Origin: Macrostomum lignano
Taxonomy: Eukaryota
Length of the DNA stretch: 64,000 nt
NCBI GenBank assembly: GCA_002269645.1
Contig: NIVC01002652.1
Coordinates: 62,001-126,000 of the forward strand
Direction of reading: 5' to 3'
Position numbers and translations under genes: made by a program. Below are positions 5,446-54,105 of the stretch, in pieces (the first letter of the stretch is position 1; every line of letters starts with the position of its first letter). Below the pieces are notes generated by a model. The model had not been told where the DNA came from. It saw only the letters and a program-made list of their open reading frames with translations, and did no database searches.

Positions 5446-5451
5446 TTTATT
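5446..5451 (-). terminator. Candidate polyadenylation signal AATAAA for the neuropeptide gene
   Basis: tttatt on the plus strand, about 190 nt downstream of the TAA stop. Confidence 0.35.
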
Positions 5452-5642
5452 GAACACAGAGGTTTTCCTTTGGTTAACAGAATTTGAAGGACTTCGCTCG
5501 GCATCTTGCTCAACCAAGGACAAATTGAGTAGCGACTGCGATGGAGTGCGAATCTGGATACACAGCAAATGGATTTAGTGTTGAGTAATAGTTCCTCAAA
5601 AGCCACAGAGCATCTTGGTGAACTGCTCATTGTCGATCGATC

Positions 5643-6538
5643 TTATTCATAGTTGATCGGGTCGAAGTATCCGCCCCTCGATTGATAGTAGGCCCTCTTC
5701 TTGCCGTAGTTGATGGGATCAAAGTAGGCCCTCTTCTTGCCGTAGTTGATGGGATCAAAGTAGGCCCTCTTCTTGCCGTAGTTGATGGGATCAAAGTAGG
5801 CCCTCTTCTTGCCGTAGTTGATGGGATCAAAGTAGGCCCTCTTCTTGCCGTAGTTGATGGGATCAAAGTAGGCCCTCTTCTTGCCGTAGTTGATGGGATC
5901 AAAGTAGGCCCTCTTCTTGCCGTAGTTGATGGGATCAAAGTAGGCCCTCTTCTTGCCGTAGTTGATGGGATCAAAGTAGGCCCTCTTCTTGCCGTAGTTG
6001 ATGGGATCAAAGTAGGCCCTCTTCTTGCCGTAGTTGATGGGATCAAAGTAGGCCCTCTTCTTGCCGTAGTTGATGGGATCAAAGTAGGCCCTCTTCTTGC
6101 CGTAGTTGATGGGATCAAAGTAGGCCCTCTTCTTGCCGTAGTTGATGGGATCAAAGTAGGCCCTCTTCTTGCCGTAGTTGATGGGATCAAAGTAGGCCTC
6201 TTCTTGCCGTAGTTGATGGGATCAAAGTAGGCCCTCTTCTTGCCGTAGTTGATGGGATCAAAGTAGGCCCTCTTCTTGCCGTAGTTGATGGGATCAAAGT
6301 AGGCCCTCTTCTTGCCGTAGTTGATGGGATCAAAGTAGGCCCTCTTCTTGCCGTAGTTGATGGGATCAAAGTAGGCCCTCTTCTTGCCGTAGTTGATGGG
6401 ATCAAAGTAGGCCCTCTTCTTGCCGTAGTTGATGGGATCAAAGTAGGCCCTCTTCTTGCCGTAGTTGATGGGATCAAAGTAGGCCCTCTTCTCTGCATTA
6501 ACTTCATCTCCATCAGATGACGCATCCTTGATGTCTGT
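5643..6538 (-). CDS. Neuropeptide precursor, exon 2: acidic spacer, 22 x AYFDPINY-GKKR, terminal AYYQSRGGYFDPINYE*; 1-bp deletion at ~6197
   Basis: Acceptor ttgatttctcag|ACA GAC ATC (phase 0). The 36-bp unit encodes peptide + Gly + dibasic site. From 6482 to 5691 is 22x36-1 bp. The final copy uses different synonymous codons for YFDPINY and ends in TAA at 5643-5645. Confidence 0.9.
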
Positions 6539-6957
6539 CTGAGAAATCAAGAGGTTAATTTCTCGTCACCCATGGTTTATGATGTCCAAATTAGGCAAGG
6601 AACAGTCGTTAGATTTAATCTGTAGCCCCCTTGTTAGGTCCCCATAAATAATGAAGATTCTCGAAATTTTCCAAATCGTGCTCAACTACCTGTTCTGAGC
6701 CCCGGCTTCAAAGCCAAAGTCATCAGGCCAGCTGACTAGCTGAAGGCGTGGACAAGAATAATTCTGAAGTATCTAAATCGCGCTGGGAGCCGTTCTTCCT
6801 AACCGGGCGTGCAGTTGACTGACTCAGACGGGGTCGCAGGCTTGATGAAAACTGTGCAGCATTGGGAGTTGGACTGTCCGGCTTAGTGGATCTGGATTGC
6901 GGGTTGGATAGCACTGCAGCTTTATTCGAATCTTGTTAGGAAGGAGAAACCTGCGTC

Positions 6958-8150
6958 CCAGCTCTCTCAGCTGTCTCAGCTCTCTCAGCTCTCTCAGCAC
7001 TCTCAGCTCTCTCAGCTCTCTCAGCTCTCTCTCAGCTCTCTCAGCTCTCTCAGCTGTCTCTCAGCTCTCTCAGCTCTCTCAGCTCTCTCAGCTCTCTCTC
7101 AGCTCTCTCAGCTCTCTCAGCTCTCTCAGCTCTCTCAGCTCTCTCTCAGCTCTCTCAGCTCTCTCAGCTCTCTCAGCTCTCTCAGCTCTCTCAGCACTCT
7201 CAGCTCTCTCAGCTCTCTCTCAGCTCTCTCAGCTCTCTCAGCTCTCTCTCAGCTCTCTCTCAGCTCTCTCAGCTCTCTCTCAGCTCTCTCTCAGCTCTCT
7301 CAGCACTCTCAGCTCTCTTAGCTCTCTCTCAGCTCTCTCAGCTCTCTCAGCTCTCTCTCAGCTCTCTCAGCTCTCTCAGCTCTCTCTCAGCTCTCTCTCA
7401 GCTCTCTCAGCTCTCTCAGCTCTCTCTCAGCTCTCTCAGCTCTCTCAGCTCTCTCAGCTCTCTCAGCTCTCTCTCAGCTCTCTCAGCTCTCTCAGCTCTC
7501 TCAGCTCTCTCTCAGCTCTCTCAGCTCTCTCAGCTCTCTCAGCTCTCTCAGCTCTCTCAGCTCTCTCTCAGCTCTCTCAGCTCTCTCAGCTCTCTCAGCT
7601 CTCTCAGCTCTCTCAGCTCTCTCAGCTCTCTCAGCTCTCTCTCAGCACTCTCAGCTCTCTCAGCTCTCTTTGTCTCGCCACTTGTCTCTCTCCTCTCCCT
7701 CCCTGCCTCTCCTCTCTCCCTCCCTGCCTCTCCTCTCTCCCTCCCTGCCTCTCCTCTCTCCCTCCCTGCCTCTCCTCTCTCCCTCCCTGCCTCTCCTCTC
7801 TCCCTCCCTGCCTCTCCTCTCTCCCTCCCTGCCTCTCCTCTCTCCCTCCCTGCCTCTCCTCTCTCCCTCCCTGCCTCTCCTCTCTCCCTCCCTGCCTCTC
7901 CTCTCTCCCTCCCTGCCTCTCCTCTCTCCCTCCCTGCCTCTCCTCTCTCCCTCCCTGCCTCTCCTCTCTCCCTTTTGTCACTGCCTCTCCTCTCCCTCAC
8001 TGTCTCTCCTCTCTCCCTCACTGCCTCTCCTCTCTCCCTTTTGTCTCTCCTCTCCTTCACTGCCTCTCCTCTCCCTCACTGTCTCTCCTCTCACTCACTG
8101 TCTCTCCTCTCCCTCACTGTCTCTCCTCTCCTTCACTGCCTTTCCTCCCT
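6958..8150. repeat. Compound CT-rich intronic satellite: (ctctcag-type 10/12-mers) then 21-bp (ctccctccctgcctctcctct)
   Basis: Direct tandem repeats inside the neuropeptide gene intron. Confidence 0.95.
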
Positions 8151-8684
8151 CCCTGTGTTTCCACTTTCCCTCTCGTAAAAAGCCATTCCCGGGAGCAGAG
8201 CATTCCGAACGTCACTGCGGTAATGAGAGGCTTTAAGCCTTTTGTTTTCAATTTTGCATTCGACTGCAAAGAGTGAGTAGGTTTTAGTATCGAATTTCTC
8301 TGAACAATACTCGAACATAATAATAATAATATGCTTGAAAGCCCCTAGTTTTTCATCAGGCCTAATAGATACCTTTTACGGTGATGAGGGAGCCAAAAAC
8401 TTTCTGTCCAGGTGGGGGGATCCAGAAGGGCACTGCTTTGTTGTGTTTGACATGTCTCAAAGATTTTTAGAAGGCCTTAGAAGTAAATTAAAAGTTCTAA
8501 TCCCTAACATAAGAATCCTTAGTATCATATGTAAGAAGGGGCAACTTAGAAAATTCCAACATCAAAAGTTTTAAAACTTGCTCGTCAAGTACTTCGTTTT
8601 TTATTTTTAATACGGGCTATGATCAGTTAGGATAACTTGGGTAGAGTTGAGGAAAGAACATGGGTTGGGACAAGGACTCAGGAT

Positions 8685-9090
8685 AGTAGGTGGGATGAGG
8701 ACTAAGGAGAGTAGGTGGGATGAGGACTCAGGAGAGTAGGTGGGATGAGGACTAAAGAGAGTAGGTGGGATGAGGACTCAGGAGAGTAGGTGGGATAAGA
8801 ATTCAGGAGAGTAGGTGGGATGAGGACTAAGGAGAGTAGGTGGGATAAGAATTCAGGAGAGTAGGTGGGATGAGGACTAAGGAGAGTAGGTGGGATAAGA
8901 ATTCAGGAGAGTAGGTGGGATGAGGACTAAGGAGAGTAGGTGGGATGAGGACTCAGGAGAGTAGGTGGGATGAGGACTAAGGAGAGTAGGTGGGATGAGG
9001 ACTCAGGAGAGTAGGTGGGATGAGGACTCAGGAGAGTAGGTGGGATGAGGACTCAGGAGAGTAGGTGGGATGAGGACTCAGGAGAGTAGG
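8685..9090. repeat. 25-bp minisatellite (ggactcaggagagtaggtgggatga)n
   Basis: Tandem copies ending about 50 bp from the exon 1 donor. Confidence 0.95.
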
Positions 9091-9142
9091 TTGGGTACAG
9101 AGGGTCAGTGATGGTGAGGCTCATTGACAATAGAATTCTCAC

Positions 9143-9229
9143 CCTGGACTCCGCAGAAAAAGCGGTGCAGCCCAGCAACAGCAGGAGCAGTAGAACCAGT
9201 GGAGATGTTGAGAAGTTTCGCGAGGCCAT
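9143..9229 (-). CDS. Neuropeptide precursor, exon 1: signal peptide MASRNFSTSPLVLLLLLLLGCTAFSA-ESR
   Basis: ATG at 9229, 29 codons, Leu-rich hydrophobic core and A-F-S-A type cleavage site. Donor AGG|GTGAGA is phase 0 and joins exon 2 in frame. An intervening exon is not excluded. Confidence 0.82.
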
Positions 9230-10590: not shown

Positions 10591-11554
10591 ACAGTTCTGA
10601 TTTAACCAGAGTGACTTTGTAAGAGCAGCGATCGTGTCCAACACGTGCAGGTTAACCACATTTTCAGCAGACTTCCATTGCCAAATTGCCAATTTACGAT
10701 CGTAGGCTAATCAATATTCATGCGGTTGAGGCCAACAGGGAGTAATTAGTTTAGCGCTGCTGTCTTTTGCAGTACTATTAATAAGAGGACAGCTTATCCA
10801 AAATGAGTTAATCGAATGCAACTAAAATGCCTGGTTGACTACTGCATGCATCTCAGGATTCTCAATCTACAAATGCGCTCTCAGTGGCGTAGAGGCGGAG
10901 GGGCAGTCTGGCTTTTGGCCATAGACAAAAATATCTACTAATTAATGAACTAACTTTCTAAATTAATAACTATTTTAATTGACTGTTTTTGGCACTTTAA
11001 TGACCTGATCCGTGGCAACGCTGCATCTTTTAATTTTTCTGCTTGGTCTTGATTTTCTTCACTTTGATAACTTTGTTTTTTTATTCTTAAAAATTTTATG
11101 GGCATGATAGGCTATATAGTTACATAATATGGCACAATAGCAATAGGAATGATTACGAGCATCCTACTGAGTCCTCCGCACATGCAAGCGCGCCAATACT
11201 GTACGCAGGCACAGCACTCGTACACACGCTCACACAGGGTGTACAGCAGCATTTTGACTTTCTAATCGTCAGGCATTGTACACTCTTTGTGCCATTTTTA
11301 ATTTTTCACTTTTTCAATTAAAGGTTGACAACGAGCGAGTCACCATCACGGCCAGGTCCATCCCAGCGACCTGTTGCGCCGACGGCGACCCCAGCTGGCA
11401 TGCCACGTCATCCGCTCCGAGTCGCGGTGCTCACAGCCGGAGCAGGAGGTTCTGCTGCTGAAGCTGCGACTTCCTGTTGGTGGACGCCGACGCACCGGAA
11501 TTCTGTCGGATAAATGGCCTACGTTTGACAGCGTATTTTCTTTTTGTTTTACTT

Positions 11555-12271: not shown

Positions 12272-12520
12272 GTCGTAGTATTTCAGAGCTTCTTCCAGTT
12301 GCTCACAAACCGCCTGAAGGCCACTGCAACACCACGCCCTCCTTCCATCCGTCGCCGGGCAGTCCCAGACATGCTGCATTGTCTCGTCTTCCATGTCGCA
12401 ACACCGGCATAAGCTTTCGTCCTGGAGCCCTATCCTGTAGGCCGCCAATTCGATCGAGTGGCCTGTGCGCATGTTCCTGATGATGGACTGACGACGAGTC
12501 AAGTGAAGACGGACTTTGAA
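12272..12520 (-). mobile_element. 3'-terminal relic of a non-LTR retrotransposon (LINE) ORF2, C-terminal CCHC knuckle region
   Basis: Translation RTGHSIELAAYRIGLQDESLCRCCDMEDETMQHVWDCPA fits the RTGH...RIG...C..C...ET..H...CP motif found after RT/RNase H in I/R1-group LINEs. Confidence 0.75.
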
Positions 12521-13890: not shown

Positions 13891-13917
13891 ACAAACTCCT
13901 ACAGCTAACAACCAGCA

Positions 13918-14751
13918 ATGGGTTCCTCGGCTGGCAAGGAAGAGCAGCCGCCGCCGCCGCAGTGGCGGGAGGCCGGGCGCACCGTGCCGGATCCGCGCGA
14001 TCCGCCCGACGAAGAAGGCGCCGGTCGGAACTTTGACTTCGGCGATAGGGTCCGGCGCCAGCAGCCGGAACGAGCGGCGCCAACTGGCGAGCGCGGCATC
14101 GGACGCCCCTCCGATCCGTCCTCGGGAGCCGGAGGCGGCGGCGGCGGCAACCGCGAGTTCATCCGGGTCGGCGACAGGCTGGAGAACAAGCCGATGGACA
14201 AGTTGCAGCACGGCCTGGGCGACCCAAAGCGGGAGAAATTCAAAGCGCCAGTTGACAAGAAGAAGCTGCGAGGCACCGTGGCGACTGAGAAGCAGCCAGG
14301 AGCCACGGCTGGCCGGCAGGTGCTTAACTGGGAGGAGGTGGACAACACCAGCTCCTACGTTGTGATATCGAAGCCACAGATGCTGGTGGAAGACGCCGAG
14401 CCCTACAATAAGAGGCCGTTGCCAACTTTTCGCAGAGGCGCTGACGTGGCCGAACTCGACGAAGAAGAGCTCGAGGCCAGACGGGAGGCGGAGCTGCTGC
14501 CGCTGGAGCAGCAGGTCGACCCGGGCGTCAACATTGACGGCTTGGAGATCGACGCTGTCGGCTACCAGGCCAGGCTGGACCCCCTGCCGCTGCTGCTGCC
14601 GCGCAAGGCAAATGTGCCGAGGGAGGACTACCTGGGCACCGCCTGCGGCCAGGATGTCCTGGGCGTGGAGGACGACGGCTACGCCAGAGACGTTGGCCGG
14701 CTGCCAAATGGGGAGAGAATAAACTTGCTGCGCATCATTAGCCAGTATTGA
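13918..14751 (+). CDS. Uncharacterised 277-aa protein; N-terminal MGSSAG resembles an N-myristoylation site
   Basis: Uninterrupted GC-rich ORF with strong GC3 codon bias, ATG in gcaATGG context, TGA stop. I do not recognise the family. Confidence 0.8.
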   Translation: MGSSAGKEEQPPPPQWREAGRTVPDPRDPPDEEGAGRNFDFGDRVRRQQPERAAPTGERGIGRPSDPSSGAGGGGGGNREFIRVGDRLENKPMDKLQHGLGDPKREKFKAPVDKKKLRGTVATEKQPGATAGRQVLNWEEVDNTSSYVVISKPQMLVEDAEPYNKRPLPTFRRGADVAELDEEELEARREAELLPLEQQVDPGVNIDGLEIDAVGYQARLDPLPLLLPRKANVPREDYLGTACGQDVLGVEDDGYARDVGRLPNGERINLLRIISQY

Positions 14752-18600: not shown

Positions 18601-21147
18601 TTTTTCATCAAAAACCAGGCAATCACTATCAATTGCCATATTCTCATTGCATGGCCAGTCTGTTCAGGGATTAATTTTTTTTAAATGCGACCTTACAGTA
18701 CATGTAATTCAAACAATAAGCAGACATATGTGTGAAGGGTTTATTTGTCTATAAATATCGAAAATATTGCTGCATGGAAAATAATGCAAAAACAAATAAT
18801 ACAGGCAGATGCATCGGTTTGCGCGAGCCCGCGAGGGCTAACCGCCTTAAGGTGCATGAGGGGGGCTATTTGGGTTGTTGGCTGTCTGGTGGGGGGGGGG
18901 GGGGGTAATTTGTACATGTATTTAGGCCGCCACCTTTGTGGCTGCTAATAAGCTTTGCTTTCGTTTGATATGTATCTCGCTAATTTATTAATTTTAAACC
19001 TTGTCTATTCCATTCGTTTTAACAATACATGAAATAAATACTATTGACTGAACTGGGGTGCATCCCCAAGCTTTTCGCTGCCTCGCCGTCGCCACGCCAC
19101 ACTCGGTTTTTCTTGCCTCCCCTTCACTAATAAAGTAGAAAAATAACATCCAGCATTCTATTGCATGCACGAATTCACACATTGAGACTGCATGTATGCT
19201 GCTGATACATGCATGCGCATTGCACATGTTTGTGTTAAAGCCAAGATACGCCATTAAATATAAAGATATAAATGTTACCCATTTAAACCTGGCTGTCGGA
19301 CAGTAGTTCTTCCGGTTTGACATATTCGCGTGGGGGGCCTATTCTTTTTCTTTCTAACAGTCTAACAAATCAAGCATGCACACTATTTTAGATTTTTTAA
19401 GTTTTTGTTTTTTTGAAAGCCTAATTTTATTTTTTTTATGAGAAAACGTTTTACGTGTTTTATATTTGAGACAGTAATAAAAACCAAAAAAATTTAAAAT
19501 ATACATAAAAAAGTGACAATAAAGGAGATATTAATAATTAGTCATATGACCAATAATACCTCCTATTAGTCCTATATTATATATACGGTATAGGCTATAT
19601 AATTTAATATAACTTAGCCTTACTAAACAAGAAATAGAATATAAAACAACTGTTATTCAATAAACAATAATATCAATAAAGCTATTGATAAGTATTGGTT
19701 TTTGCGAGCTATCTCAGCCAAGGAGCAAGCAAACTCATCCATTCCATAGATTTCAATACGACGAAGGAGGTGGTTTGAACCATAGACTATCACGTTTTTT
19801 CAACCAAACTCATCCAACGGGCGAGCAATCTCAGCCATAGCTTGTCTGCCCATTCATTTCCTCTTCCCTTCTTTCTTTCCTCCTCCTCCTCAATTTCCTG
19901 TGTTCTGATGTGCTGCTCTATCATAAAGTCTCTTATATACAAACCAATTAAATTTTTCGCTTAATAAACAAGCTATAAAAATAATTTAAAGACATTGATT
20001 TGTTTGCATGTCTATTTTTCCCTTTAAATTAATAATCAGTATTAATAATGTATTAAAATTGTCGGGCACTAGTTTATTAATAGCTTTATAAACATTAAAA
20101 TTTTCATTAACATTATTGGACTGTAATTAAGTTAAGATTTTTTGCTATAACAAATTAATAAATTTTCATTATTTTTTTAGTTAATGTCAATAATAAACTC
20201 ATGGTTACAATGAATGACAATGCCAATGAGAAAAAAACAAAATTATCAGTCTAAAGAGAAGTTACAACATTACAAATATATTTTAATTATCAAAGTGCCT
20301 AATTATTATATTTTGTTTGTGATGATAATATGTGATGATATGTGATGATAATAATATGTAACAACTTCTTACTTATGAACCTCAATTTAATGAATAAAAA
20401 TTATGAACCTTTTGCTTGCAAATGAGCATCACTTTGATTCACTTCTTTCCCAATATTTCATATCTTTCTATTGTGCCTACTAGTGCTATTGAAACAACCT
20501 TCCTATTCACATTTTTATTAACTAATTGGCTTTGAATTTTCAAATAAATAAGCTACTTGTTTTATGTTATACTTACTTTTAATAGTATTTTTCATTTAAG
20601 ATTTTGCTTATTATTTGTTACTTTTTTACTTTGAACTTCTTTGGATAATCTGTGTCAGCTGAAAATATAGAATAGCAAAGATGGTATATTATAAAGTCTA
20701 TACAAGAAGAAAGTGCAGAATTCCTATATTTTTTATGTTTACTTTAATGGATTATCACTTATCAATGATTGTCAATTAACTTAAAATTAAGAGTTAATAA
20801 GTTAAGATTTTTTGTTTTAATGCTAATGCTTTTGTCATTAATGGAAGTTAAGATTTCTATTAAGGGTGCCTAATACTAGTACATATTAAAGTAATATAAT
20901 TTCTAATAGTGTGGTAGGCATAATTATCTTTTAGCAAAAAGTAGTTAATGCCTATACAGACAACAAAATTTTCAATAATATCAAGCTAAAATTAGAATTT
21001 AACTTTGTTTATATTAAACTTATAATATAACTCCACTCCACACCAATTCTTTTCATATAAGTTTTCTTAAACAGCACTTTGAGCAAGTCTTAAGCACCTA
21101 GGCGCAGTTATCAGCAGCTGCAGTCGCGCACAAACTTCCAGCAGGAC

Positions 21148-22191
21148 ATGCCCGGAACTGGCAGCAGCCGCAAGCTGGACACTGATCTGGCCGCTAAGCT
21201 GGCCCGACGGCTGATGCGCTGCGAGGGCCGGCCTTGTCGGCACGCTTCAACCACTGACAGCGAAGGCGACGAAGACGACATTGATGCGCAGATCCGACGC
21301 CGGCAGCGCCAGGACGGCGGCGGCATCAGCCTCTGTCCGCAGTTGGCGCTGAAGCTGGCCAGCCGGCTGGAGAAGTCCGAGTCCTGCGATAGCGGCGTCT
21401 CCGTGGCCTCGTCCTCCTTCTGTCTGACGGCCGCGCCAGCGCCGGCCAGCAGCCTCGGCGACGCCGACGCCAGCCGGTCGCTGCCGGTCAGCCGGCGCGG
21501 CTCCCTGGAGGCCGAGTTTCCCTCCCTGCCACGGCGGGAGCTGCTGCGCCTGCGCGACCTCTTCTCCGCTCAGGCCGCCGACGCCGCCGCGAAAACCGAC
21601 GCCGGTATCAGCAGAGTCAGCGAGCCACGCCTGCCGCCTGAGGCCGTCGGCCGCCTGTTGGAGCAGCTGGGCACGCCGCTGACCCACCTGACGCTGCGCT
21701 CCGCCATGCGCGACCTGGACGCGGCCGGACCGGACGGCCGGATCGGCTTTCGTGGCTTCCTGGCGCTGCTCGGCCGGGCTCGCGTGGTCGCTGCTGCCGC
21801 CGTCGCCGCCGCCGCGGCTGCTTCCGCCGCATCAGCTGACAGCGAAGAGGACGGCCTGATGCCGGCGTGGATCGATGCCAGCGCCGAGGTGACCTCCGTG
21901 CCCGTTGAAGAGGTTGGCGTCCTGGAGGCGCGCAACTTCTTCGAGTCGCAGATCGCCGTTCTGCAGCAGCGCGCCAGCCGGCCGGCCGCTGCTCCGGCTG
22001 CCGCAGCGCACTCTTTGTCTAGCAGCGAGGGGGCCCGGCGCCGGTTGTCTCCGCTGGCTGGAGCTCGCGACCAGACGTCAGGGCCGACTGTCGCTCGCGA
22101 CCAGGCGTCAGGGCCGACTGTCGCTCGCGACCAGGCGTTAGGGCCGACTGTCGCTCGCGACCAGGCGTCAGGGCCGATGTCGGTTGATTAG
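21148..22191 (+). CDS. EFHD2: Divergent EF-hand domain protein of the EFHD1/EFHD2 (swiprosin-1) family, intronless
   Basis: DLAAKLARRL, LEQLGTPLTHLTLRSAMRDLD, IGFRGFLALL and VGVLEARNFFESQI correspond to the EFHD motifs ELATKLSRRL, MEKLGAPQTHLGLKNMIKEVD, LSFREFLLIF and EGVKGAKSFFEAKV (alignment from memory). The C-terminus is a 30-bp repeat (ARDQASGPTV). Confidence 0.8.
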   Translation: MPGTGSSRKLDTDLAAKLARRLMRCEGRPCRHASTTDSEGDEDDIDAQIRRRQRQDGGGISLCPQLALKLASRLEKSESCDSGVSVASSSFCLTAAPAPASSLGDADASRSLPVSRRGSLEAEFPSLPRRELLRLRDLFSAQAADAAAKTDAGISRVSEPRLPPEAVGRLLEQLGTPLTHLTLRSAMRDLDAAGPDGRIGFRGFLALLGRARVVAAAAVAAAAAASAASADSEEDGLMPAWIDASAEVTSVPVEEVGVLEARNFFESQIAVLQQRASRPAAAPAAAAHSLSSSEGARRRLSPLAGARDQTSGPTVARDQASGPTVARDQALGPTVARDQASGPMSVD

Positions 22192-22283
22192 TGGATCCAT
22201 AGATGAAGGAATTGGCGGATTGCTTAACTCGCGGTTTTCGGTGGGCTCAAGCGAGGGGTGTGTTTCATAACCTCGATATTTCA

Positions 22284-22905
22284 CAAGCTCCAATCTCCAC
22301 ACGCTCCAAACTCCACAAGCTCCAATCTCCACAAGCTCCAAACTCCACAAGCTCCAAACTCCACAAACTCCAAACTCCACAAGCTCCAATCTTCACAAGC
22401 TCCAATCTCCACAAACTCCAAACTCCACAAGCTCCAATCTTCACAAGCTCCAATCTCCACAAGCTCCAATCTCCACAAGCTCCAAACTCCACAAGCTCCA
22501 ATCTCCACAAGCTCCAAACTCCACAAGCTCCAAACTCCACAAGCTCCAATCTCCACAAGCTCCAAACTCCACAAGCTCCAAACTCCACAAGCTCCAAACT
22601 CTACAAGCTCCAATCTCCACAAGCTCCAAACTCCACAAGCCTCAAACTCCACAAGCTCCAATCTCCACAAGCTCCAAACTCCACAAGCTCCAAACTCTAC
22701 AAGCTCCAATCTCCACAAGCTCCAAACTCCACAAGCTCCAAACTCCACAAGCCTCAAACTCCACAAGCTCCAATTTCCACAAGCTCCAAACTCCACAAGC
22801 TCCAAACTCTACAAGCTCCAATCTCCACAAGCTCCAAACTCTACAAGCTCCAATCTCCACAAGCTCCAATCTCCACAAGCCTCAAACTCCACAAGCTCCA
22901 AACTT
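22284..22905. repeat. 16/17-bp minisatellite (ctccacaagctccaaa/t)n
   Basis: Tandem copies downstream of the EFHD-like stop. Confidence 0.96.
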
Positions 22906-31075: not shown

Positions 31076-31756
31076 GAATTTCGAAAGGCAAAATTTCGAA
31101 TTTCAATAAAATAATTGTAGCGTCCGTTAATCGGCTGATGGCATACATCAGGCATTAATGTACATGTAGAGCCTGTATTGGGTACAAAAGGCCTAGGATA
31201 CAGGATGACAGGCCGCGCCATCAGCAGAATCCTTGGCGACAGCGTAATCAGCAAGCAGTCGACGAACAAAACGCTGCAACACTGAACGCTTGGCCTTGCT
31301 CGTATAGGGTGCCGGAATCGTCAGCAGCAGCAGAAACTCCTGCACATGCGCATATTATGTACTAGCTGGCAGTCACAGTTGGTGTAGCCTACTAGCTGAC
31401 AGTCTCAGATGGTGTAGCCTACTAGCTGGAGTCTCAGATGGTGTAGCCTACTAGCTGGAGTCTCAGATGGTGTAGCCTACTAGCTAGCAGTCTCAGATGG
31501 TGTAGCCTACTAGCTGACAGTCTCAGATGGTGTAGCCTACTAGCTAACAGTCTCAGATGGTGTAGCCTACTAGCTGGAGTCTCAGATGGTGTAGCCTACT
31601 AGCTAGAAGTCTCAGATGGTGTAGCCTACTAGCTGGAGTCTCAGATGGTGTAGCCTACTAGCTGACAGTCTCAGATGGTGTAGCCTACTAGCTGACAGTC
31701 TCAGATGGTGTAGCCTACTAGCTGACAGTCTCAGATGGTGTAGCCTACTAGCTAGC

Positions 31757-34700
31757 TGTGGTAGCGTGGGTCTGCTCAGTTGCTCCGCTTAGTGTAATGT
31801 ACAGTGCAGGTGTACACCTGCACGCGCGCGTGTGATTGGCTGACGCTTTGTCAGACAACCTTTATTGTTGGCCAGCTATATTAAATACAAGCTCTCTGCC
31901 TTGGGGGGGGTCTTACCCCCGAAGTGGAGTTTTCACAGTGGCGACGAGACTGAAACGATCCTGCGCAAATGAGTAGTGCAAGTGCACTAGGGCTTGTCGG
32001 CCCATACGAAGAAGGCTCTGAGCCGTGGCATATGTACCAAGCAAGGTTAGAACAATATTTTGTTGCCAATGACGTCACTGAGGAAGCGAAAAAGCGAGCG
32101 ATTCTGCTGAGTTCATGCGGCAAGAAAGTCTTCCATCTGGCCTTCAGTCTTCTGTCTCCTGCACAGCCATCAGCCAAGAGCTACACCGAAATTTGCGAAG
32201 CACTGAAGAGCCATTTCGAGCCTGAGGAGTCCGAGATCGTCCATCGTTACCGGTTCTACACCAGAAATCGCAGGGAAGGTGAGGGCGTCGCTGACTTTGT
32301 CGCAGACCTCCGAGACCTGGCTCGCGACTGCAAGTTCGGCGACAGCCTGACTTCGATGCTTCGCGACAGGCTGGTGCTGGGAATCAACAACGACGGCGCT
32401 CAGCGGCGGCTGCTGGCGGAGCCCGATCTCACTCTAGCGAAGGCATTGAAGCTGGCCCTGGCCCACGAGTCCGCCGCCAAGGGCTGCCAGCTGGTGTCGG
32501 GAGCGAGTAAGCCAGATCCAGTCAGTCAGGAGTCCGTCAGCATTGTCAAGCAACAGCAGAAGTCATCTTCGACAAGGAGGTGCTTCAGGTGCCTGTCAAC
32601 GAAGCATCTCGCTAATAAGTGCCCGTTCGCCACCCAGAAGTGCTACAAGTGCTCAAAGACCGGCCACACTGCGGCTGCCTGCAAATCCCAGTCGAAGGAC
32701 GATAGAAGAGAGGCTCTGCAGATGCAGGACGGTGAGGAAAAAGACAGCTGCGAGGAGGAAACGGCCCACTCACTGTACCAGCTGTCCGGCAAGCGAGTGT
32801 CGAAGGTGCCGCCGATTACAACGACGGTGCGCATCAATGGCCGACCTGTTGTCATGGAAGTGGACACCGGAGCCTCCGTGTCCCTGGTATCCTCGAAGAC
32901 CTACAGGACCGTGCTCAACTCCCAGCCAGCACTGCAGCCTGCGTCCATGCAGCTGCGAACATACTCCGGTGAGAAAGTGCCAATTGAAGGCTGCATCTGC
33001 GTTGCTGTGGAAGCTGCTGAAGCACCGCCCAAGTCACTCAGCCTCCTTGTGGTCGCCGGCTGCGGATCCGACCTGCTCGGAAGAGACTGGCTGTCCGAGT
33101 TGCGGCTCGACTGGAGATCAATCAAGCAAATGGCGGCTGCTCCGGAGGTGTCGCCCAGACTGCAGCAGCTGCTCGACAAGTACAGCGATGTTTTTTCGCC
33201 TGAGCTAGGAAAGTACAACGGACCACCAGTGAGTTTGAATATGAAACCCGATGCTCAACCTCGCTTTATGAAGGCCAGGAATCTCCCCTTTGCTGTGAAG
33301 GACAAGGTGGAGAGCCAACTGAACCGCGAGATCGAACTAGGAATCCTGGTGCCCGTGCAGCACTCCGAGTACGCATCGCCGGTGGTGCCAGTGCTCAAGT
33401 CCGACGGCTCTGTGAGGGTCTGCGCCGACTTTAAGCAGACCGTCAACCCGAACGTGGAGCCCGACTCGTATCCTCTGCCGCGGATCGAAGAGCTGTTCGC
33501 GAAGCTGACTGGTGGGCGGCTCTTCACTAAGCTCGACTTGTCGCAGGCGTACATGCAGCTGCCACTCGATGAGGCCTCCCAGGAAGTCTGCACGATCAAT
33601 ACGCACAAAGGGCTGCTTCGGTACTCGCGGCTGCCCTTCGGTGTCTCGCCAGCGGTCGGGATTTTTCAGCGCCGGATGGACTGCTTGCTGCAAGGAATCA
33701 CCAGCACCGCCTGCTTCATCGATGACCTCATCATCACCGGGAAGGACGACAGCAGTCATCTGAACTCCCTGGAGCAGGTTCTGGAGAAGCTGAGCCAGAG
33801 CGGCCTCCGGTGCAAGCTGGAGAAGTGCCAGTTCATGCAGACGAGCGTCAGTTATCTCGGTCACCGCATCGATGCCGACGGCCTGCACCCGATCAAAGAC
33901 AAGGTCGAGGCGATTGTCAGCGCTCCAGCTCCCAAGGACGCAAGTCAGCTGCGCAGCTTCCTAGGCATGGTGAACTACTATGGCAAGTTCCTACCTAATT
34001 TGTCTCAAGTCCTGGCACCGCTGCACCTGCTGCTGCGCGAGCAACACCGCTGGAACTGGGGCGCTGCTCAGAACGCCGCTTTCGAGAAGTGCAAGGCCCT
34101 GCTGTCTTCGGCTCCGGTATTGGCGCACTTCGACCCGAGCGAAGACCTGCTGCTTGAGTGCGACGCGTCCCCCTACGGTCTGGGCGCGGTCATCAGCCAC
34201 AGGATCGATGGAGCTGTCCGGCCTGTGGCCTTTTCCTCGCGTACGTTGCACGACGCTGAGAAAAACTACTCGCAGCTCGAGAAGGAAGCCATCGCTGTAG
34301 TGTTTGCGGTCAAGAAGTTCAACGCGTACCTGTTCGGCCGCCCATTTCTGCTGGCGAGTGACCACAAACCTCTGCTTGGATTGCTTGCTGAGAACAAGGC
34401 CGTGCCGGCCCTGGCATCTGGAAGAATTCAGAGGTGGGCTCTGCTGCTGTCTGGCTATAACTACCGCATGGTTCACCGAGCCGGAGCCTCACTGCTGTGC
34501 GCCGATGCCCTGAGTCGCCTGCCGCTGCCCGACAAGCCGGCGACGGTCCCGAAGCTGGCAGAGCTGGTCATGCTGATGGACCACCTGGACGATGGACCTG
34601 TCACGGCAGCTCAGATACGCGGCCTGACTCGAAGGGACCCCACACTAGCCCGAGCTCTGCACTTCACGCAAATTGGCTGGCCAGAGCGGGTCAGTGACGA

Positions 34701-36330
34701 TCTGCTGCCATACTCCAAGAGAGCGGCTGAGCTCGGTGCGCAAGACGGCTGCCTCCTGTGGGGCGCTCGAGTGGTGGTCCCGGTCGGAGCGCGAGCTGCA
34801 CTGCTCCAGGTGCTGCATCAAGGTCATGCGGGGGCGTCACGCATGAAGACGCTAGCCCGAGGTTATTTCTGGTGGCCAGGATTAGACTCGGAGATTGAAA
34901 ACCTGGCCAAGGCCTGCTCTGACTGTCAGGAGTTGCAGAACGCCCCGGCGCCTTCGCCAATGTTGTCGTGGCCGTGGCCTGACCGACCGTGGTCTCGAGT
35001 GCATATTGACTATGCGGGTCCGGTGACTGGCAAGATGCTGCTGGTTGTCGTCGATGCTCATTCAAAGTGGCTGGATGTGCATGTGGTGACGTCAGCGACC
35101 TCAGCTGTCACCATCCAGAAACTCCGCTCCAGCTTCGCGACACACGGGTTGCCAGATGTGCTGGTGTCGGACAATGGGCCCAACTTGGTCAGCGAGGAGT
35201 TGTCCGACTTTCTGCGGAGGAACGACATTCAGCACGTGCGCGTTGCTCCCTACCATCCGGCGTCCAACGGCCTGGCGGAACGAGCTGTCCAGACGCTGAA
35301 GCGGTCCCTGGAGAAGCAGCGCGAAGGCTCCTTGGAGGATAAGGTCGCCCGGTTCCTGCTGAGCTACCGGGTCACTCCGCATGCGACAACTGGTGTGGCT
35401 CCCTGCGAACTCCTGATGGAACGGCGCCTGTGCACGTTGCTAGATCGAGCTCGGCCAGACCTGGGAGCAAGAGTACAGCGTAAGCAAAGTCAGCAAAAAG
35501 AGCACCACGACTGCAAAGCTCGGTTCTGGACCTTCGAGACTGACGACGCTGTACTCGCCAGAGACTTTGGAGCCAACAGAGGTCGGTGGAAGCCGGCGCG
35601 AGTTGTCGGTGCCGCCGGTCCGGCCTCCTACCTGTGCGGCTTCGATGGCGACGACCGAGTGGTGCGGCGGCACGTTGACCATGTCCGCGGTGGTCCTGAG
35701 CAGCCGCGGCCTACAGGAGCTGGCGTGACAGACGGTGCTACCGACGCCAAGGCCGCACCTGAGCCGGAAGCTGCGATGCCGGCCGTGGACGAGCCGCCAA
35801 ACCTGGCTGCTCCTGGAGACCCTGAGATCGACGGGTCTCTGCGCCGATCGTCGCGAGTTCGACGTCCCCCGGAGCGCCTGAGCTACGGGTGAGGTCATCT
35901 GTGAAAGAGACTGTTTTGATTTACTGTTGAGTTCGCACGTTTAATTTTGGATTTTGAACTTTGTTATGGTTATGGTTTATTTTCCTTTATTCTGTTGTGT
36001 CGTTTGCTTTCCTATCAGGCGTTTGCGTAGTTTTGGTACTGGTTAATTATTATTTATTATTAAGTTATTAAGTTTTGAGTTATTGTTCCTCACTAAAATG
36101 TGTTGCTCTAATGTATTCTCTTGCGATCCCTGATCCCCATGTAGATGGGGAGGGATGTGGTAGCGTGGGTCTGCTCAGTTGCTCCGCTTAGTGTAATGTA
36201 CAGTGCAGGTGTACACCTGCACGCGCGCGTGTGATTGGCTGACGCTTTGTCAGACAACCTTTATTGTTGGCCAGCTATATTAAATACAAGCTCTCTGCCT
36301 TGGGGGGGGGTCTTACCCCCGAAGTGGAGT
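31757..36330 (+). mobile_element. Full-length Ty3/Gypsy LTR retrotransposon (K02A2.6/Mag-like)
   Basis: 5' LTR 31757-31937 (TG...CA). PBS-like tggcgacgag at 31939. Polypurine tract gatggggaggga before the 3' LTR at 36156-36330. The LTRs are identical except for one G in a G-run, and the 3' LTR lacks its last 7 bp. Confidence 0.98.
31969..35892 (+). CDS. Gag-Pol polyprotein, 1307 aa, single ORF
   Basis: Two CCHC knuckles (CFRC...H...C, CYKC...H...C), protease VDTGA, RT (LPFG, FIDD), RNase H (CDAS, SDHKPL), integrase HHCC and DDE (HIDYAG, SDNGP, GLAERAV), in gypsy order. Confidence 0.98.
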   Translation: MSSASALGLVGPYEEGSEPWHMYQARLEQYFVANDVTEEAKKRAILLSSCGKKVFHLAFSLLSPAQPSAKSYTEICEALKSHFEPEESEIVHRYRFYTRNRREGEGVADFVADLRDLARDCKFGDSLTSMLRDRLVLGINNDGAQRRLLAEPDLTLAKALKLALAHESAAKGCQLVSGASKPDPVSQESVSIVKQQQKSSSTRRCFRCLSTKHLANKCPFATQKCYKCSKTGHTAAACKSQSKDDRREALQMQDGEEKDSCEEETAHSLYQLSGKRVSKVPPITTTVRINGRPVVMEVDTGASVSLVSSKTYRTVLNSQPALQPASMQLRTYSGEKVPIEGCICVAVEAAEAPPKSLSLLVVAGCGSDLLGRDWLSELRLDWRSIKQMAAAPEVSPRLQQLLDKYSDVFSPELGKYNGPPVSLNMKPDAQPRFMKARNLPFAVKDKVESQLNREIELGILVPVQHSEYASPVVPVLKSDGSVRVCADFKQTVNPNVEPDSYPLPRIEELFAKLTGGRLFTKLDLSQAYMQLPLDEASQEVCTINTHKGLLRYSRLPFGVSPAVGIFQRRMDCLLQGITSTACFIDDLIITGKDDSSHLNSLEQVLEKLSQSGLRCKLEKCQFMQTSVSYLGHRIDADGLHPIKDKVEAIVSAPAPKDASQLRSFLGMVNYYGKFLPNLSQVLAPLHLLLREQHRWNWGAAQNAAFEKCKALLSSAPVLAHFDPSEDLLLECDASPYGLGAVISHRIDGAVRPVAFSSRTLHDAEKNYSQLEKEAIAVVFAVKKFNAYLFGRPFLLASDHKPLLGLLAENKAVPALASGRIQRWALLLSGYNYRMVHRAGASLLCADALSRLPLPDKPATVPKLAELVMLMDHLDDGPVTAAQIRGLTRRDPTLARALHFTQIGWPERVSDDLLPYSKRAAELGAQDGCLLWGARVVVPVGARAALLQVLHQGHAGASRMKTLARGYFWWPGLDSEIENLAKACSDCQELQNAPAPSPMLSWPWPDRPWSRVHIDYAGPVTGKMLLVVVDAHSKWLDVHVVTSATSAVTIQKLRSSFATHGLPDVLVSDNGPNLVSEELSDFLRRNDIQHVRVAPYHPASNGLAERAVQTLKRSLEKQREGSLEDKVARFLLSYRVTPHATTGVAPCELLMERRLCTLLDRARPDLGARVQRKQSQQKEHHDCKARFWTFETDDAVLARDFGANRGRWKPARVVGAAGPASYLCGFDGDDRVVRRHVDHVRGGPEQPRPTGAGVTDGATDAKAAPEPEAAMPAVDEPPNLAAPGDPEIDGSLRRSSRVRRPPERLSYG

Positions 36331-37988
36331 CTCAGATGGTGTAGCCTACTAGCTGGCAGTCTCAGATTGTGTAGCCTACTAGCTGGCAGTCTCAGATGAT
36401 GTAGCCTACTAGCTGGCAGTCTCAGATGGTGTAGCCTACTAGCTGACAGTCTCAGATGGTGTAGCCTACTAGCTAGCAGTCTCAGATGGTGTAGCCTACT
36501 AGCTGGAGTCTCAGATGGTGTAGCCTACTAGCTGGAGTCTCAGATGGTGTAGCCTACTAGCTGGAGTCTCAGATGGTGTAGCCTACTAGCTGACAGTCTC
36601 AGATGGTGTAGCCTACTAGCTGACAGTCTCAGATGGTGTAGCCTACTAGCTGACAGTCTCAGATGGTGTAGCCTACTAGCTGGAGTTTCAGGTGGTGTAG
36701 CCTACTAGCTGACAGTCTCAGATGGTGTAGCCTACTAGCTGACAGTCTCAGATGGTGTAGCCTACTAGCTGACAGTCTCAGATGGTGTAGCCTACTAGCT
36801 GACAGTCTCAGATGGTGTAGCCTACTAGCTGACAGTCTCAGATGGTGTAGCCTACTAGCTGACAGTCTCAGATGGTGTAGCCTACTAGCTGACAGTCTCA
36901 GATGGTGTAGCCTACTAGCTGACAGTCTCAGATGGTGTAGCCTACTAGCTGACAGTCTCAGATGGTGTAGCCTACTAGCTAGCAGTCTCAGATGGTGTAG
37001 CCTACTAGCTGACAGTCTCAGATGGTGTAGCCTACTAGCTGGAGTTTCAGGTGGTGTAGCCTACTAGCTGGAGTTTCAGGTGGTGTAGCCTACTAGCTGG
37101 AGTCTCAGATGGTGTAGCCTACTAGCTGACAGTCTCAGATGGTGTAGCCTACTAGCTGACAGTCTCAGATGGTGTAGCCTACTAGCTGGAGTTTCAGGTG
37201 GTGTAGCCTACTAGCTGGAGTCTCAGATGGTGTAGCCTACTAGCTGACAGTCTCAGATGGTGTAGCCTACTAGCTGACAGTCTCAGATGGTGTAGCCTAC
37301 TAGCTGGCAGTCTCAGATGGCGTAGCCTACCATCAAATGAGCCATCGCATCACGCCAACTGTGCTGCAATTCGCTGTGTGGAAAAGGCTTAAAATTTTGT
37401 GCATTTATAAATAGGCGCCGATGTGGGGATTTCAGTTGATAACACCTGAGCGTACTCTATTGTACACAAGTAATTTTTGCTTGGAAATGCAGTGCTGGAC
37501 TAATCGCGTACAGAGAAGTGTTTAACCTTATGGCGAGCGCTTACTCCAGTTTTGGCAGACTTTTTTGGCCTTATTTGCTGGCCTGCGCTGTACTCGTCCA
37601 GTCGTCACCCTGACATTGGAATAGCTTTGCACATTAGAAAGTACTCACATTGAGAGGGCCATGTATAGAGACGAACAACAGACTTTCTACGGTCCGCTGT
37701 AGTACAGTGCTGCTATTAATTAATTTTGCAACGGAATTATTCTTTTGTGGAGTAGACGGTATAACAAAGTCCATAATTCTCGCAGGTTCAACAAAAACAT
37801 TCTACACCTAAAAGCGAAATTATTTGTCTTTTTGTGCCTTTAAGTTTTTCTGACGATTATAGCGAGTGTTTTTCAGTATAGGAGTACTGCAAAATTTTTC
37901 AAAAGTCAATAATATCCTCGTCTTTCGTATCGATCTACATACATTCCATTCACTTTTTAGCCTTAATCACTTTTGGTCAAAGATCACT

Positions 37989-40305
37989 ATGCCAGCTGTA
38001 CTGAATACTCATTTTTACTGGATCCAGCTGTACTCGTACACTGCTCTGGTCTGTTTCTTCCATCAGCTCATGGTGGCAGAAGCGGGTACGTACGCTCGTA
38101 TGATTCGTATTGTTATGCTTTTTGAGATGCATCTATGACACAATAATATCACACTATTTTCTTGCTTGTAATCCACTGTTCATTTGTTAGCCTTGGATAC
38201 GGAAAGTTCGAGGGCGTAGTCATTGGCAGTCATAGGAGTTTTCATTGGCAAGCGCGTCTCTGGCGCGCCGATTGAGTTTAAGGGAGCGCCAACAGCAATC
38301 GGCGCCAGCTAATAGCTCAAATCTAGATAATCTGCATGACTTTGAATTAAAATTTATCTCTCCTTCCAATCCAGCTGTTGCTTCGGACTGCTGGGATCGG
38401 TACAACTACATCAGGCAATGCAGCTCCCGTCCCTGCGAGCCAAATCACTACTTTGGCATCAGTTGCCTCTGTAAGCCCTGTCCGTCGAATCTGAGTGGTC
38501 GGGACTGCCTGGTTCAGCTGGGCATCTGTCCGCAGAACCAAATACCGAATAACAGACTGGAGTCGGGTGGCAATCGTGCCAGTAGGTCGGGAGACACTAT
38601 TTCTGCCAACGAGCAGGCCGCAACAGGTAAGGATCGAACGCATATTACATGTCTATACTAATTGATCTTTCCTAACACAGTGCAGCAAGCTTTGAATCTG
38701 GTACATGTATATTGTATTAATTTTTAAGTTGTCTAGCTTTTAGTCTAGGTAGCCTTTACTAGCAATTAACATATAAAATGAAAAAGGGCTTTTTGCTAGC
38801 CACAGGGTTGGGTAGGTTGGTAGGTAGAGCCCTTTATTGATGCAGATGGTGAGGATAGATAGATAAATAGATTGATTGATTGACGGACAGATAGAAAGAC
38901 AGATATAGACAGATAGGTGGACAATTGTGGCAGATACATGTAGACAGATAGACAATTAGACAGGTAGACAGATGGACAGATGCAGGGATAAACAGACAGA
39001 TAGATAAGACAGTATTAGATAAACAGAAAGACAGACAGTAGATAGAAGGTCGTAGATAGACCCAGATAAACGATCAGTAGAATTAGTCTATGCAAACTTT
39101 CTACTTTCCATCATCGAGTAGTCAAAGTGCAGGATTTATACTTTGAATACCTGCATATAAATTGTAATGAAACCAATTAGCATTCACACCTTAAAGGGCC
39201 TTTTCGTTAGCTAGAATTACTTGGTGCAGTGAGCATGCTTTTACTATTATGCTGTGCTTTAGCGTATAGATACTATAGACTATAGGCTGTGCTGAGTAAG
39301 TAGTATAAGAAGTCTTGCGTTTCAGTTTTTTCACTGTTTTAGATAACAGAAATTTATTCTACTTTGTCGATTTTTATTCGCTTTTCTCCCTTAGGTCTTT
39401 CTGGTGGAAAAATTGCGGCTATTTCCTGCCCTGTTGTTGCGCTAGCAATCATCGCTGCTATCGGATTTCTTGTGTTTTACAGACGATGGAAGACAGCTAG
39501 GAATGGTAGTGACCATGGTAGCCGGATAGAAGATTCAGAAGAGAGCCATCCTCTGAATGACCTGCAGGATCACAACAACCAGCCACAGGAGCACAACAAC
39601 CAGCCGCAGGATCGCAACAACCAGCCACCGGATCACAACAACCAGCTGCCGGATCACAACAACCAGCCACCGGATCACAACAACCAGCTGCCGGATCACA
39701 ACAACCAGCCACAGGATCACAACAACCAGCCGCCGGATCACAACAACCAGCTGCCGGATCACAACAACCAGCCACCGGATCACAACAACCAGCCACAGGA
39801 TCACAGCAACCAGCCACCGGATCACAACAACCAGCCACAGGATCACAACAACCAGCCACAGGATCACAACAACCAGCCACAGGATCACAACAACCAGCCG
39901 CAGGATCGCAACAACCAGCCACCGGATCACAACAACCAGCCACATGATCACAACAACCAGCCGCCGGATCACAACAACCAGCTGCCGGATCACAACAACC
40001 AGCCACAGGATCACAGCAACCAGCCACCGGATCACAACAACCAGCCACAGGATCACAACAACCAGCTGCCGGATCACAACAACCAGCCGCCCGATCACAA
40101 CAACCAGCCACAGGATCACAACAACCAGCCACAGGATCACAGCAACCAGCCACCGGATCACAACAACCAGCCACAGGATCACAACAACCAGCCACAGGGT
40201 CACAGCAACCAGCCGCCCATGGATCCGATCGCTCGCAATCCTCAGCCGTTCTCCACTTCAGTCCATGATGCCAAAGCACTCGAGTTAGATCGCAATGTTG
40301 CTTGA
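37989..40305 (+). CDS. Single-pass type I membrane protein: signal peptide, Cys-rich EGF-like domain, TM helix, (DHNNQPx)31 cytoplasmic tail
   Basis: Exons 37989-38085, 38375-38626 and 39395-40305, all GT-AG with phase 1/1 joins in frame. Cys cluster CWDRYNYIRQCSSRPCEPNHYFGISCLCKPCPSNLSGRDC. TM IAAISCPVVALAIIAAIGFLVFY followed by RRWK. Confidence 0.8.
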
Positions 40306-53400: not shown

Positions 53401-54105
53401 TAGAGTGAGATGAGATAAGGAGTCTAGAGTGAGATTGAGAGGCTAGAGTGAGATGAGATTAATAGGCTAGAGTGAGATGAAATTAAGAGGCTAGAGCGAG
53501 ATGAGATTAAGAGGCTAGAGCGAGATGAGATTAAGAGGCTGGATTGAGATGAGATTAAGAGGCTGGATTGAGATGAGATTAAGAGGCTAGATTGAGATGA
53601 GATTAAGAGGCTAGATTGAGATGAGATTAAGAGGCTAGAGTGAGATGAGACTAAGAGGCTGGAGTGAAGATCCTCACCATTTCTCCCTAATCCTGACCTC
53701 CTGTTCCCGCATGTGCCCCCCCCCCAGGTGGAGGCCTGCCTGTCCAACGTACTCTCGCTGGCCGACTGCGCTGTCTATGGCGTCGAGGTGCCCGGCAACG
53801 AGGGCCGCGCCGGCATGGCGGCTGTGGCCGATCCCGAGGGCCGCGGTGTTGAAGTGGCCCGGCTGGCCCAGCACCTGCCCCGTCTGCTGCCAGCCTACGC
53901 CAGGCCGCTGTTCCTTCGAATTGTCCGCCACATCGAGGCCACCGGCACCTTCAAGATGAAGAAGACCGAGCTGCGCAAGGACGGCTTCGATCCCGACAGG
54001 TGCTGCGGAGATCCCCTCTACTACCTGTGCTGCCGGTCTGGGCAGTACCTGGCCCTGGATGGGCCTGCATTTGCCGCCATCGCTAGGGGAGAAATCCGAT
54101 TCTAG
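47498..54105 (+). CDS. SLC27A: Long-chain fatty acid transport protein / very-long-chain acyl-CoA synthetase (FATP, SLC27A1/4-like); five exons; 1-bp deletion at ~49920
   Basis: Exons 47498-47860, 49787-50191, 51863-52020, 52348-53010 and 53728-54105. AMP-binding motif YTSG|TTGMPKA spans intron 2. FATP motif [20 protein letters not shown]|VE. Restoring one C gives [14 protein letters not shown]. Confidence 0.95.
48050..49770. repeat. 13-bp minisatellite (catagagaatcgc)n in FATP intron 1
   Basis: Direct tandem copies running up to the acceptor. Confidence 0.96.
50235..51790. repeat. 41-bp minisatellite (gagaacagctgtttacctgggatcaccggtattttatgatt)n in FATP intron 2
   Basis: Direct tandem copies. 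Confidence 0.96.
52065..52320. repeat. ~19-bp minisatellite (ttctgatcccattcccgaa)n in FATP intron 3
   Basis: Direct tandem copies. Confidence 0.93.
53065..53670. repeat. ~19-24-bp minisatellite (gagtgagatgagattaagaggcta)n in FATP intron 4
   Basis: Direct tandem copies. Confidence 0.93.

Follow-up and report, generated by a model that had tools for sequence, protein, structure and literature searches.

Introduction

Planarian SPP-15 and schistosome NPP-26 belong to a family of short flatworm neuropeptides with a Phe-Asp-Pro-Ile (FDPI) core, and here we report a locus in Macrostomum lignano that very probably is a two-exon gene for a secreted precursor of this family. The locus lies in a 64,000-nt stretch of the M. 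lignano genome (assembly GCA_002269645.1, contig NIVC01002652.1, positions 62,001 to 126,000 of the forward strand), hereafter called the window, and its second exon contains a 36-bp tandem array whose units each encode AYFDPINY. In the planarian, amidated SPP-15 products and a Gly-extended intermediate have been seen by tandem mass spectrometry (MS) (Collins et al. 2010, PMC2953531).

Studies of the schistosome orthologue detected Sm-npp-26 peptides by MS as free acids (-OH forms) (PMC9495596), identified NPP-26 as a marker of a small neuron cluster in miracidia with weak apical-gland expression (PMC11349301), and found punctate neuronal patterns in adults (PMC10783048, PMC13367911). Two G protein-coupled receptors (GPCRs), SmGPCR20 and SmGPCR9, are candidate receptors: SmGPCR20 showed interaction in a yeast assay, and NFDPILF at 1 uM gave a G-alpha-q response with SmGPCR9 measured by bioluminescence resonance energy transfer, while RNA interference of npp-26 produced curling, motility and gonad phenotypes (PMC10783048, PMC13367911). 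In the literature searched, no paper contained the peptide string and full-text searches for related strings gave nothing for Macrostomum, and the survey of Koziol et al. 2016, as a citing paper describes it, annotated 12 species, all parasitic flatworms, with Macrostomum not among them.

A two-exon precursor gene on the minus strand

Exon 1 (9143..9229, minus strand), delimited by sequence, hydropathy and a donor scan, has its ATG at 9229..9227 and 29 codons, and encodes MASRNFSTSPLVLLLLLLLGCTAFSAESR, a predicted signal peptide with Arg4, a 9-residue Leu/Val core (Kyte-Doolittle values up to 3.8) and a small-residue c-region, CTAFSA. By hydropathy and signal-peptide rules, this matches the N-terminal signal peptide of the family. 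The scan found AGG|GTGAGA as the sole consensus donor inside the exon-1 open reading frame (ORF), in phase 0; without splicing, read-through meets a stop after 58 codons. The intron (6539..9142; 2604 nt, GT..AG), an interval also skipped by the M. lignano protein model A0A1I8IE52, is composed almost wholly of three unrelated satellites with units of 25 bp (8666..9091), 21 bp (7686..8162) and 9 bp (6959..7669). At its end, TTGATTTCTCAG|ACA is the only AG with a pyrimidine tract, so placing the start of exon 2 at 6538, again in phase 0. In the frame of the array ORF, a TGA lies eight codons upstream of 6538 and no ATG follows it, so that an upstream exon is required.

Exon 2 opens with an acidic spacer, TDIKDASSDGDEVNAE, and the first KR cleavage site (6485..6538), and continues into the array. 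Tandem Repeats Finder delimited this array as 5687..6492 (22.4 copies, 99% matches), with a consensus that is the reverse complement of GCCTACTTTGATCCCATCAACTACGGCAAGAAGAGG, and unit-by-unit dissection of minus-strand positions 6484..5694 gave 22 head-to-tail 36-bp units with AYFDPINYGKKR in each. The coding array (5694..6484) thus comprises 22 units of GCCTACTTTGATCCCATCAACTACGGCAAGAAGAGG, or AYFDPINY-G-KKR, with Gly-Lys-Lys-Arg after every copy. A divergent terminal segment, AYYQSRGGYFDPINYE, with the stop codon TAA (5645..5643), follows at 5643..5693 in the frame of units 9–22, and this last copy has neither Gly nor a basic site. About 190 nt past the stop, an AATAAA (5446..5451, minus strand; sequence only) is a candidate polyadenylation signal.

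Among the 31 tandem arrays of the window, periodic G[KR][KR] in an open frame occurred only in the 36-bp array. An earlier note on this DNA had called the array a disguised neuropeptide prohormone, the only satellite of the window encoding peptide-Gly-Lys-Lys-Arg, joined in phase 0 (9143|6538, GT/AG) to an upstream signal-peptide exon. The uniqueness of the array was borne out (1 of 31), the junction agrees with a consensus donor and acceptor and recurs in A0A1I8IE52, and the prohormone reading gained support from homology, gene anatomy and the in-frame A0A1I8IE52. The 22-copy product of the note was correct in its 22 units, but not in its continuous frame, as a 1-bp deletion in unit 8 had been overlooked.

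Relationship to SPP-15 and NPP-26

A search with the spliced product gave only flatworm proteins in the top ranks, namely Clonorchis CLF_106202 and Opisthorchis CRM22_004603, both with [A/S]HFDPIMF between KR/KRR. Using a profile together with published peptide strings, we found Schistosoma japonicum SJCHGC06632 and proteins of S. rodhaini, S. haematobium, S. turkestanicum, S. mattheei and S. curassoni, as well as of Heterobilharzia, Trichobilharzia, four Paragonimus species, Mesocestoides and Fasciola, and an exhaustive HMMER search added Hymenolepis/Rodentolepis and Echinostoma to these NPP-26 relatives. The peptides listed for Sja-npp-26 matched the S. japonicum protein exactly and those for Sm-npp-26 the S. 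rodhaini protein, and Table 3 of Collins et al. 2010 aligns the npp-26 peptides with the MS-confirmed planarian SPP-15 peptides FDPIMF-amide, FDPIQF-amide and FDPIQFG (PMC2953531). Through this peptide identity, the family that the earlier note had named (planarian spp-15, FDPIxF-amide) proved to be the right one.

BLASTP aligned the window product with S. japonicum SJCHGC06632 (P0058) collinearly from the signal peptide to the final residue (E = 2e-16), and hhalign against a 12-protein NPP-26 profile built without the window sequence gave 99.3% probability (E = 2e-20). The F, D, P and I columns are invariant across the 12 family members, and the tandem F-D-P-I-x-[FY] copies between basic sites are represented here by 22 AYFDPINY units flanked by KR/KKR. 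The final copy stands at the C-terminus after a short spacer in both proteins (...KKR-AYYQSRGG-YFDPINYE* in the window, ...KR-NADHQFDKR-EYFDPIIY* in the schistosome), the window sequence having one extra Glu. These results indicated that the locus adds a previously undescribed member to a known flatworm family and does not encode a new kind of peptide.

Like the window gene, Schistosoma NPP-26 (Smp_071050, SJCHGC06632) and its trematode and cestode orthologues have a signal peptide, a spacer and tandem x-Y/H-F-D-P-I-x-F/Y octapeptides between dibasic sites; NPP-26 also shares the short odd spacer with a last copy at the extreme C-terminus, and includes Tyr-ending copies (SYFDPIIY, EHFDPIIY). 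Unlike the window gene, it has no Gly ahead of the basic site, and its peptides are therefore free acids; the orthologues carry 4–8 heterogeneous copies, whereas M. lignano has 15–22 identical ones, and position 7 is I, L, A or M in NPP-26 but Asn in M. lignano. SPP-15 of Schmidtea mediterranea, another free-living flatworm, shares the FDPI core and the Gly amidation signal, but ends in Phe-amide instead of Tyr-amide, a comparison made at the level of the peptides. Classical multi-copy precursors of amidated peptides, such as molluscan FMRFamide and cnidarian Antho-RFamide, likewise consist of tandem peptide-Gly-dibasic units that are processed by convertase, carboxypeptidase and PAM; their peptides are unrelated, and their copies normally differ from one another at some synonymous sites. 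What is new within the family is the joint presence of a C-terminal Tyr and a predicted Gly amidation signal, together with Asn at position 7, and the locus is further distinguished by a high copy number with perfectly homogenised DNA and by its concealment in annotation. The Tyr-amide ending and the copy number had both been called unusual. For the former, Tyr (SYFDPIIY) and amidation (planarian FDPIMF-amide) each occur in the family and only the combination is new; for the latter, 15–22 copies exceed the 4–8 of the parasites but are ordinary among multi-copy neuropeptide genes in general.

Pfam holds no model for the SPP-15/NPP-26 family, and an OmdA match to the 22-copy product (E = 4e-12) was rejected as a repeat-summation artefact, as no single stretch passed alone. 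A proposed link to orcokinin/pedal-peptide-type peptides found no support: word-indexed and exhaustive HMMER searches returned no named protein of this type, many of the weak matches being unnamed, and the peptide here has 8 residues with predicted amidation, compared with about 13–20, usually non-amidated, in that type.

With a profile that included two unnamed matches, we further found about 40 proteins with [LPFETLNY-GKR]n and a C-terminal YIPIDGYIM-GKR, originating from Logan runs ERR6349618-21, GCA_041447055.1 and a JGI metagenome (P0002, P0004, P0008-P0038; loci L001-L003); the literature searched contained no paper with the LPFETLNY or YIPIDGYIM strings. Like the window gene, these precursors repeat F-(D/E)-x-(L/M/I)-N-Y-G-K-R with predicted Tyr-amides, and hhalign of their profile against the window product gave 97% probability (E = 4.5e-11). 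Unlike it, they have a Cys-rich N-terminal domain with an internal CDCS motif and another C-terminal peptide. A direct link between the LPFETLNY and NPP-26 profiles failed (4% probability), and the resemblance to the window product may derive from N-Y-G-K-R alone.

A second copy and paralogues in M. lignano

Two public M. lignano models contain the same gene. A0A1I8FQJ5 (163 aa), from the first protein search, reads MASRNFSTSPLVLLLLLL...AESR, after which the repeat appears in garbled form, and is collinear with the window minus strand in stretches of 100% identity. A0A1I8IE52 (2405 aa, named 'MMS1_N domain-containing protein'), found by the exhaustive HMMER search, ends in 243 residues that read MASRNFSTSPLLLLLLLLLGCTAFAAESR-TDIKDASSDGEEVNAEKR-[AYFDPINYG(K/N)KR]x15-AYYQSRGGYFDPINYE; it thus contains both window exons, with the junction AESR|TDIKD, an unbroken frame, 15 copies and a C-terminus identical to that of the window. 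In both models exon 1 ends at ...AESR, and on the window both are collinear in segments of 98–100% identity, which places this gene, like the rest of its family, in a platyhelminth genome. The differences between the window and A0A1I8IE52 are V12L, S25A and D40E, all conservative and within the first 47 residues, one cleavage-site K-to-N change, and 22 copies versus 15; the spacer TDIKDASSDGDEVNAE is kept apart from one D-to-E change. This gives independent support to the predicted splice junction and to the frame that ends in ...YFDPINYE*.

The upstream parts of A0A1I8IE52 map to window positions 22898..21135, 14700..13911, 12473..12312 and 11430..11317, where they are antisense to other genes, and the model is therefore a fusion. 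Both public models are chimeric, with opposite-strand sequence fused to the peptide gene, and in UniProt the gene exists only as the tail of the 2405-aa 'MMS1_N domain' protein and of the 163-aa chimera. A 277-aa ORF lies at 13918..14751 (+) and has no Pfam hit; the opposite strand at 13905..14348 (-) is what A0A1I8FQJ5 and A0A1I8IE52 read.

M. lignano has at least three further precursors with FDP-type repeats (P0088, P0092, P0094). The paralogue A0A1I8ITX1 carries four copies of AYFDPMGY-GK(K)(K)R and its own signal peptide, and other FDP-type paralogues are A0A1I8HH48 (RFDPLIM x8, RKR) and PAA57848.1 (FDPLMM x5, KK). All resemble the window gene in having a signal peptide and FDP-type repeats between basic sites, but differ in their peptide sequences and low copy numbers, and the FDPL types have no Gly. 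A0A1I8ITX1 shares the Gly and the C-terminal Tyr with the window gene, and its upstream part weakly resembles window 11347..11508, a hint that the locus was duplicated. UniProt automatically names A0A1I8ITX1 'Allatostatin', a name that our Pfam search did not reproduce: neither it nor the window product matched the Pfam Allatostatin model at E <= 10, and Allatostatin-A is expected to end in Y/F-x-F-G-L-amide, while INY or MGY precedes the Gly here.

A single-base deletion in unit 8

The DNA of 21 of the 22 units is identical at every base. Unit 8 (6232..6198, minus strand), the sole exception, is 35 bp long and has the boundary AAGAGGCC instead of the AAGAGGGCC found at the other units, and unit comparison located the frameshift at 6197..6198, where GG stands against GGG at all other unit boundaries. 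Because unit 8 is one base short, the literal spliced ORF is 332 aa long and contains eight AYFDPINYGKKR copies followed by 14 copies of PTLIPSTTARRG without a stop, ending in ...NKIDRQ* at 5627; the additional tail and stop codon (5627..5642, stop at 5629..5627) belong to this frameshifted ORF only. The frame shared by units 9–22 and the terminal AYYQSRGGYFDPINYE-TAA is +1 relative to that of units 1–8, and restoring one G yielded a 327-aa product with 22 copies and the end YFDPINYE*. Considering that the frame is intact in A0A1I8IE52, the deletion is specific to the window copy or its assembly and not to the gene.

Selection on the peptide and homogenisation of the array

The last copy encodes YFDPINY as TAC TTC GAC CCG ATC AAC TAT, compared with TAC TTT GAT CCC ATC AAC TAC in the array unit. 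Four of the 21 bases differ, and all four are synonymous third positions; when four random substitutions were simulated, the peptide was unaltered in 0.02–0.2% of trials (2e-4 to 2e-3, depending on transition bias). This synonymous-only change shows purifying selection on the peptide, as had been proposed from the codons of the last copy. The identity of the 22 units is itself uninformative on selection. Their identity extends to synonymous sites beyond the reach of selection, which is explained by recent expansion or homogenisation, and the units are identical in DNA where the other arrays of the window average about 90% matches. Slippage or unequal exchange has thus expanded the array, or homogenised it, in the very recent past. 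Roughly 31 tandem arrays with periods of 4–46 bp, mostly of 81–95% internal identity, make up about 20.3 kb (32%) of the window, and the introns of several of its genes are composed largely of such arrays. The process that filled a third of the window with minisatellites is probably the same one that expanded the coding array.

Weighing of alternative explanations

Several points weigh against the assignment to the SPP-15/NPP-26 family as a working precursor. The signal peptide was called by hydropathy alone, and the -3/-1 rule would allow cleavage either after CTA or after FSA. Likeness to the family lies in a repeated 8–12-residue motif, and this repetition inflates the alignment statistics. 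In the assembled sequence the frame breaks after the eighth repeat, and the uninterrupted frame of the family is thus absent from this copy of the gene. A0A1I8FQJ5 and A0A1I8IE52 are automatic models, mis-fused upstream, and weaker evidence than cDNA, and no contig matched in exact-product look-ups with these two models, with A0A1I8ITX1 or with the literal window ORF. Neodermatan members have no Gly, and what backs amidation is the planarian member and the canonical G-K-K-R.

Given that 32% of the window is tandem repeat and that many of its arrays have open frames by construction, the array could be an ordinary non-coding minisatellite, in which case coincidence would account for the open frame, the regular KKR sites and the signal peptide upstream; the units are also identical in DNA and show no selection signature within the array. 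We rejected this explanation, which has next to no probability left and is effectively refuted by the collinear and specific homology to a peptide family MS-confirmed in other flatworms, the terminal copy that diverges only synonymously, the phase-compatible signal-peptide exon with consensus splice sites, and two further M. lignano sequences, a second copy whose protein is conserved and the paralogue A0A1I8ITX1, which has a signal peptide of its own. Flatworm glands commonly produce secreted proteins of highly repetitive sequence, and a real precursor might instead be mainly an exocrine product of the adhesive, prostate or apical-gland type and not neuronal. We consider this very unlikely, as dibasic sites and Gly around each 8-residue unit are a convertase/PAM signature and not one of structural secretion, and the orthologues mark a neuron cluster, show punctate neuronal patterns in situ and activate a GPCR in vitro.

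In the neuropeptide precursor that we favour, the deletion in unit 8 most likely reflects an assembly error at a homopolymer or a variant peculiar to this copy. That the deletion is real, and this copy an allele or homeologue of the polyploid M. lignano whose shifted frame makes it either an incipient pseudogene or a functional variant, seems to us unlikely, though not to the degree of the gland product. It is present in the sequence as given, in a window that otherwise looks well assembled (the 1307-aa gag-pol and 399-aa epimerase ORFs are intact); the shifted frame stays open through 14 units with its dibasic sites retained, and the intact copy elsewhere in M. lignano (A0A1I8IE52) could cover the function. 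In the functional-variant form, the precursor would yield eight AYFDPINY-amide copies plus new C-terminal, RR-flanked GPTLIPSTTA peptides. Against this stand the facts that nothing else distinguishes any of the 22 units, that the missing base belongs to a G homopolymer, homopolymer errors being those that long reads make most often, and that no second lesion accompanies it; moreover, any perfect repeat whose unit lacks a stop in an alternative frame will, by its construction, keep that frame open. The window and older M. lignano models often disagree by indels in this region, and at least one of the assemblies is therefore error-prone there. Because the lesion is single, sits at a homopolymer and falls in a region of such frequent disagreements, we lean towards an assembly error. 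A more far-reaching combination, which we regard as improbable, holds that the array is a live minisatellite whose copy number (15 versus 22) and frame vary among homeologues or individuals, that one frameshift gives rise to the GPTLIPSTTA peptides, and that AYFDPINY-amide links the flatworm FDPI family with the LPFETLNY-amide family of other small invertebrates. If this were true, peptide dosage would be polymorphic, and a frameshift in a perfect coding repeat would create new dibasic-flanked repeat peptides (GPTLIPSTTA) on a secreted precursor in one step.

Predicted processing and signalling

We infer that the M. lignano locus is expressed and its product processed and amidated along the canonical pathway. 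Exon 1 would provide the signal peptide, and exon 2 the acidic spacer, the AYFDPINY-Gly-Lys-Lys-Arg array and the divergent last copy. Following signal-peptide removal, a PC2-type prohormone convertase would cleave after KR/KKR, a carboxypeptidase would trim the basic residues, and PAM would turn the exposed Gly into an amide, giving many copies of AYFDPINY-NH2 ([M+H]+ 1001.47) and one free-acid C-terminal peptide ending in YFDPINYE. By analogy with the schistosome orthologue, AYFDPINY-NH2 may signal via rhodopsin-type GPCRs. Even if the deletion were real, eight AYFDPINY-amide copies would remain.

Other features of the window

A 313-aa ORF at 39364..40305 (+) encodes a transmembrane-like segment followed by about 31 PQDHNNQ-type 7-residue repeats from a 21-bp array (39565..40214); Pfam gave no hit for it, and it is a candidate second coding minisatellite. 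An intact 1307-aa Ty3/gypsy-type gag-pol ORF (31969..35892, +) with zinc knuckle, protease, reverse transcriptase, RNase H and integrase is flanked on both sides (31360..31753 and 36328..37330) by arrays of one 30-bp unit (TACTAGCTG.CAGTCTCAGATGGTGTAGCC). Exons resembling an acyl-CoA synthetase/fatty-acid-transport protein, with AMP-binding and AMP-binding_C domains, lie at 47498..48034, 52363..53073 and 53713..54105 (+), and large 13/26-bp, 41-bp and 24-bp satellites lie between them. On the minus strand, 57361..58560 is a single ORF for a 399-aa protein of the NAD-dependent epimerase/dehydratase family. At 62982..63912 (+), a CFAP97/Hemingway-like N-terminal domain is encoded by an ORF that crosses a (GTCA)n array (63161..63684) as an SVSQ repeat, a stretch that is probably an unrecognised intron and not coding.

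Discussion

M. lignano belongs to the Macrostomorpha, a group that diverged near the base of the Rhabditophora. The presence there of an FDPI peptide with Gly and a terminal Tyr suggests that amidation of this family is an ancestral trait of free-living flatworms, which the parasitic Neodermata have lost. The locus also illustrates how masking of repeats and fusion of gene models can conceal short-peptide genes. In schistosomes, current work pursues the orthologue NPP-26 as a GPCR ligand with effects on motility and gonads, and, with M. lignano amenable to transgenesis, SPP-15/NPP-26 signalling would become open to study outside a parasite.

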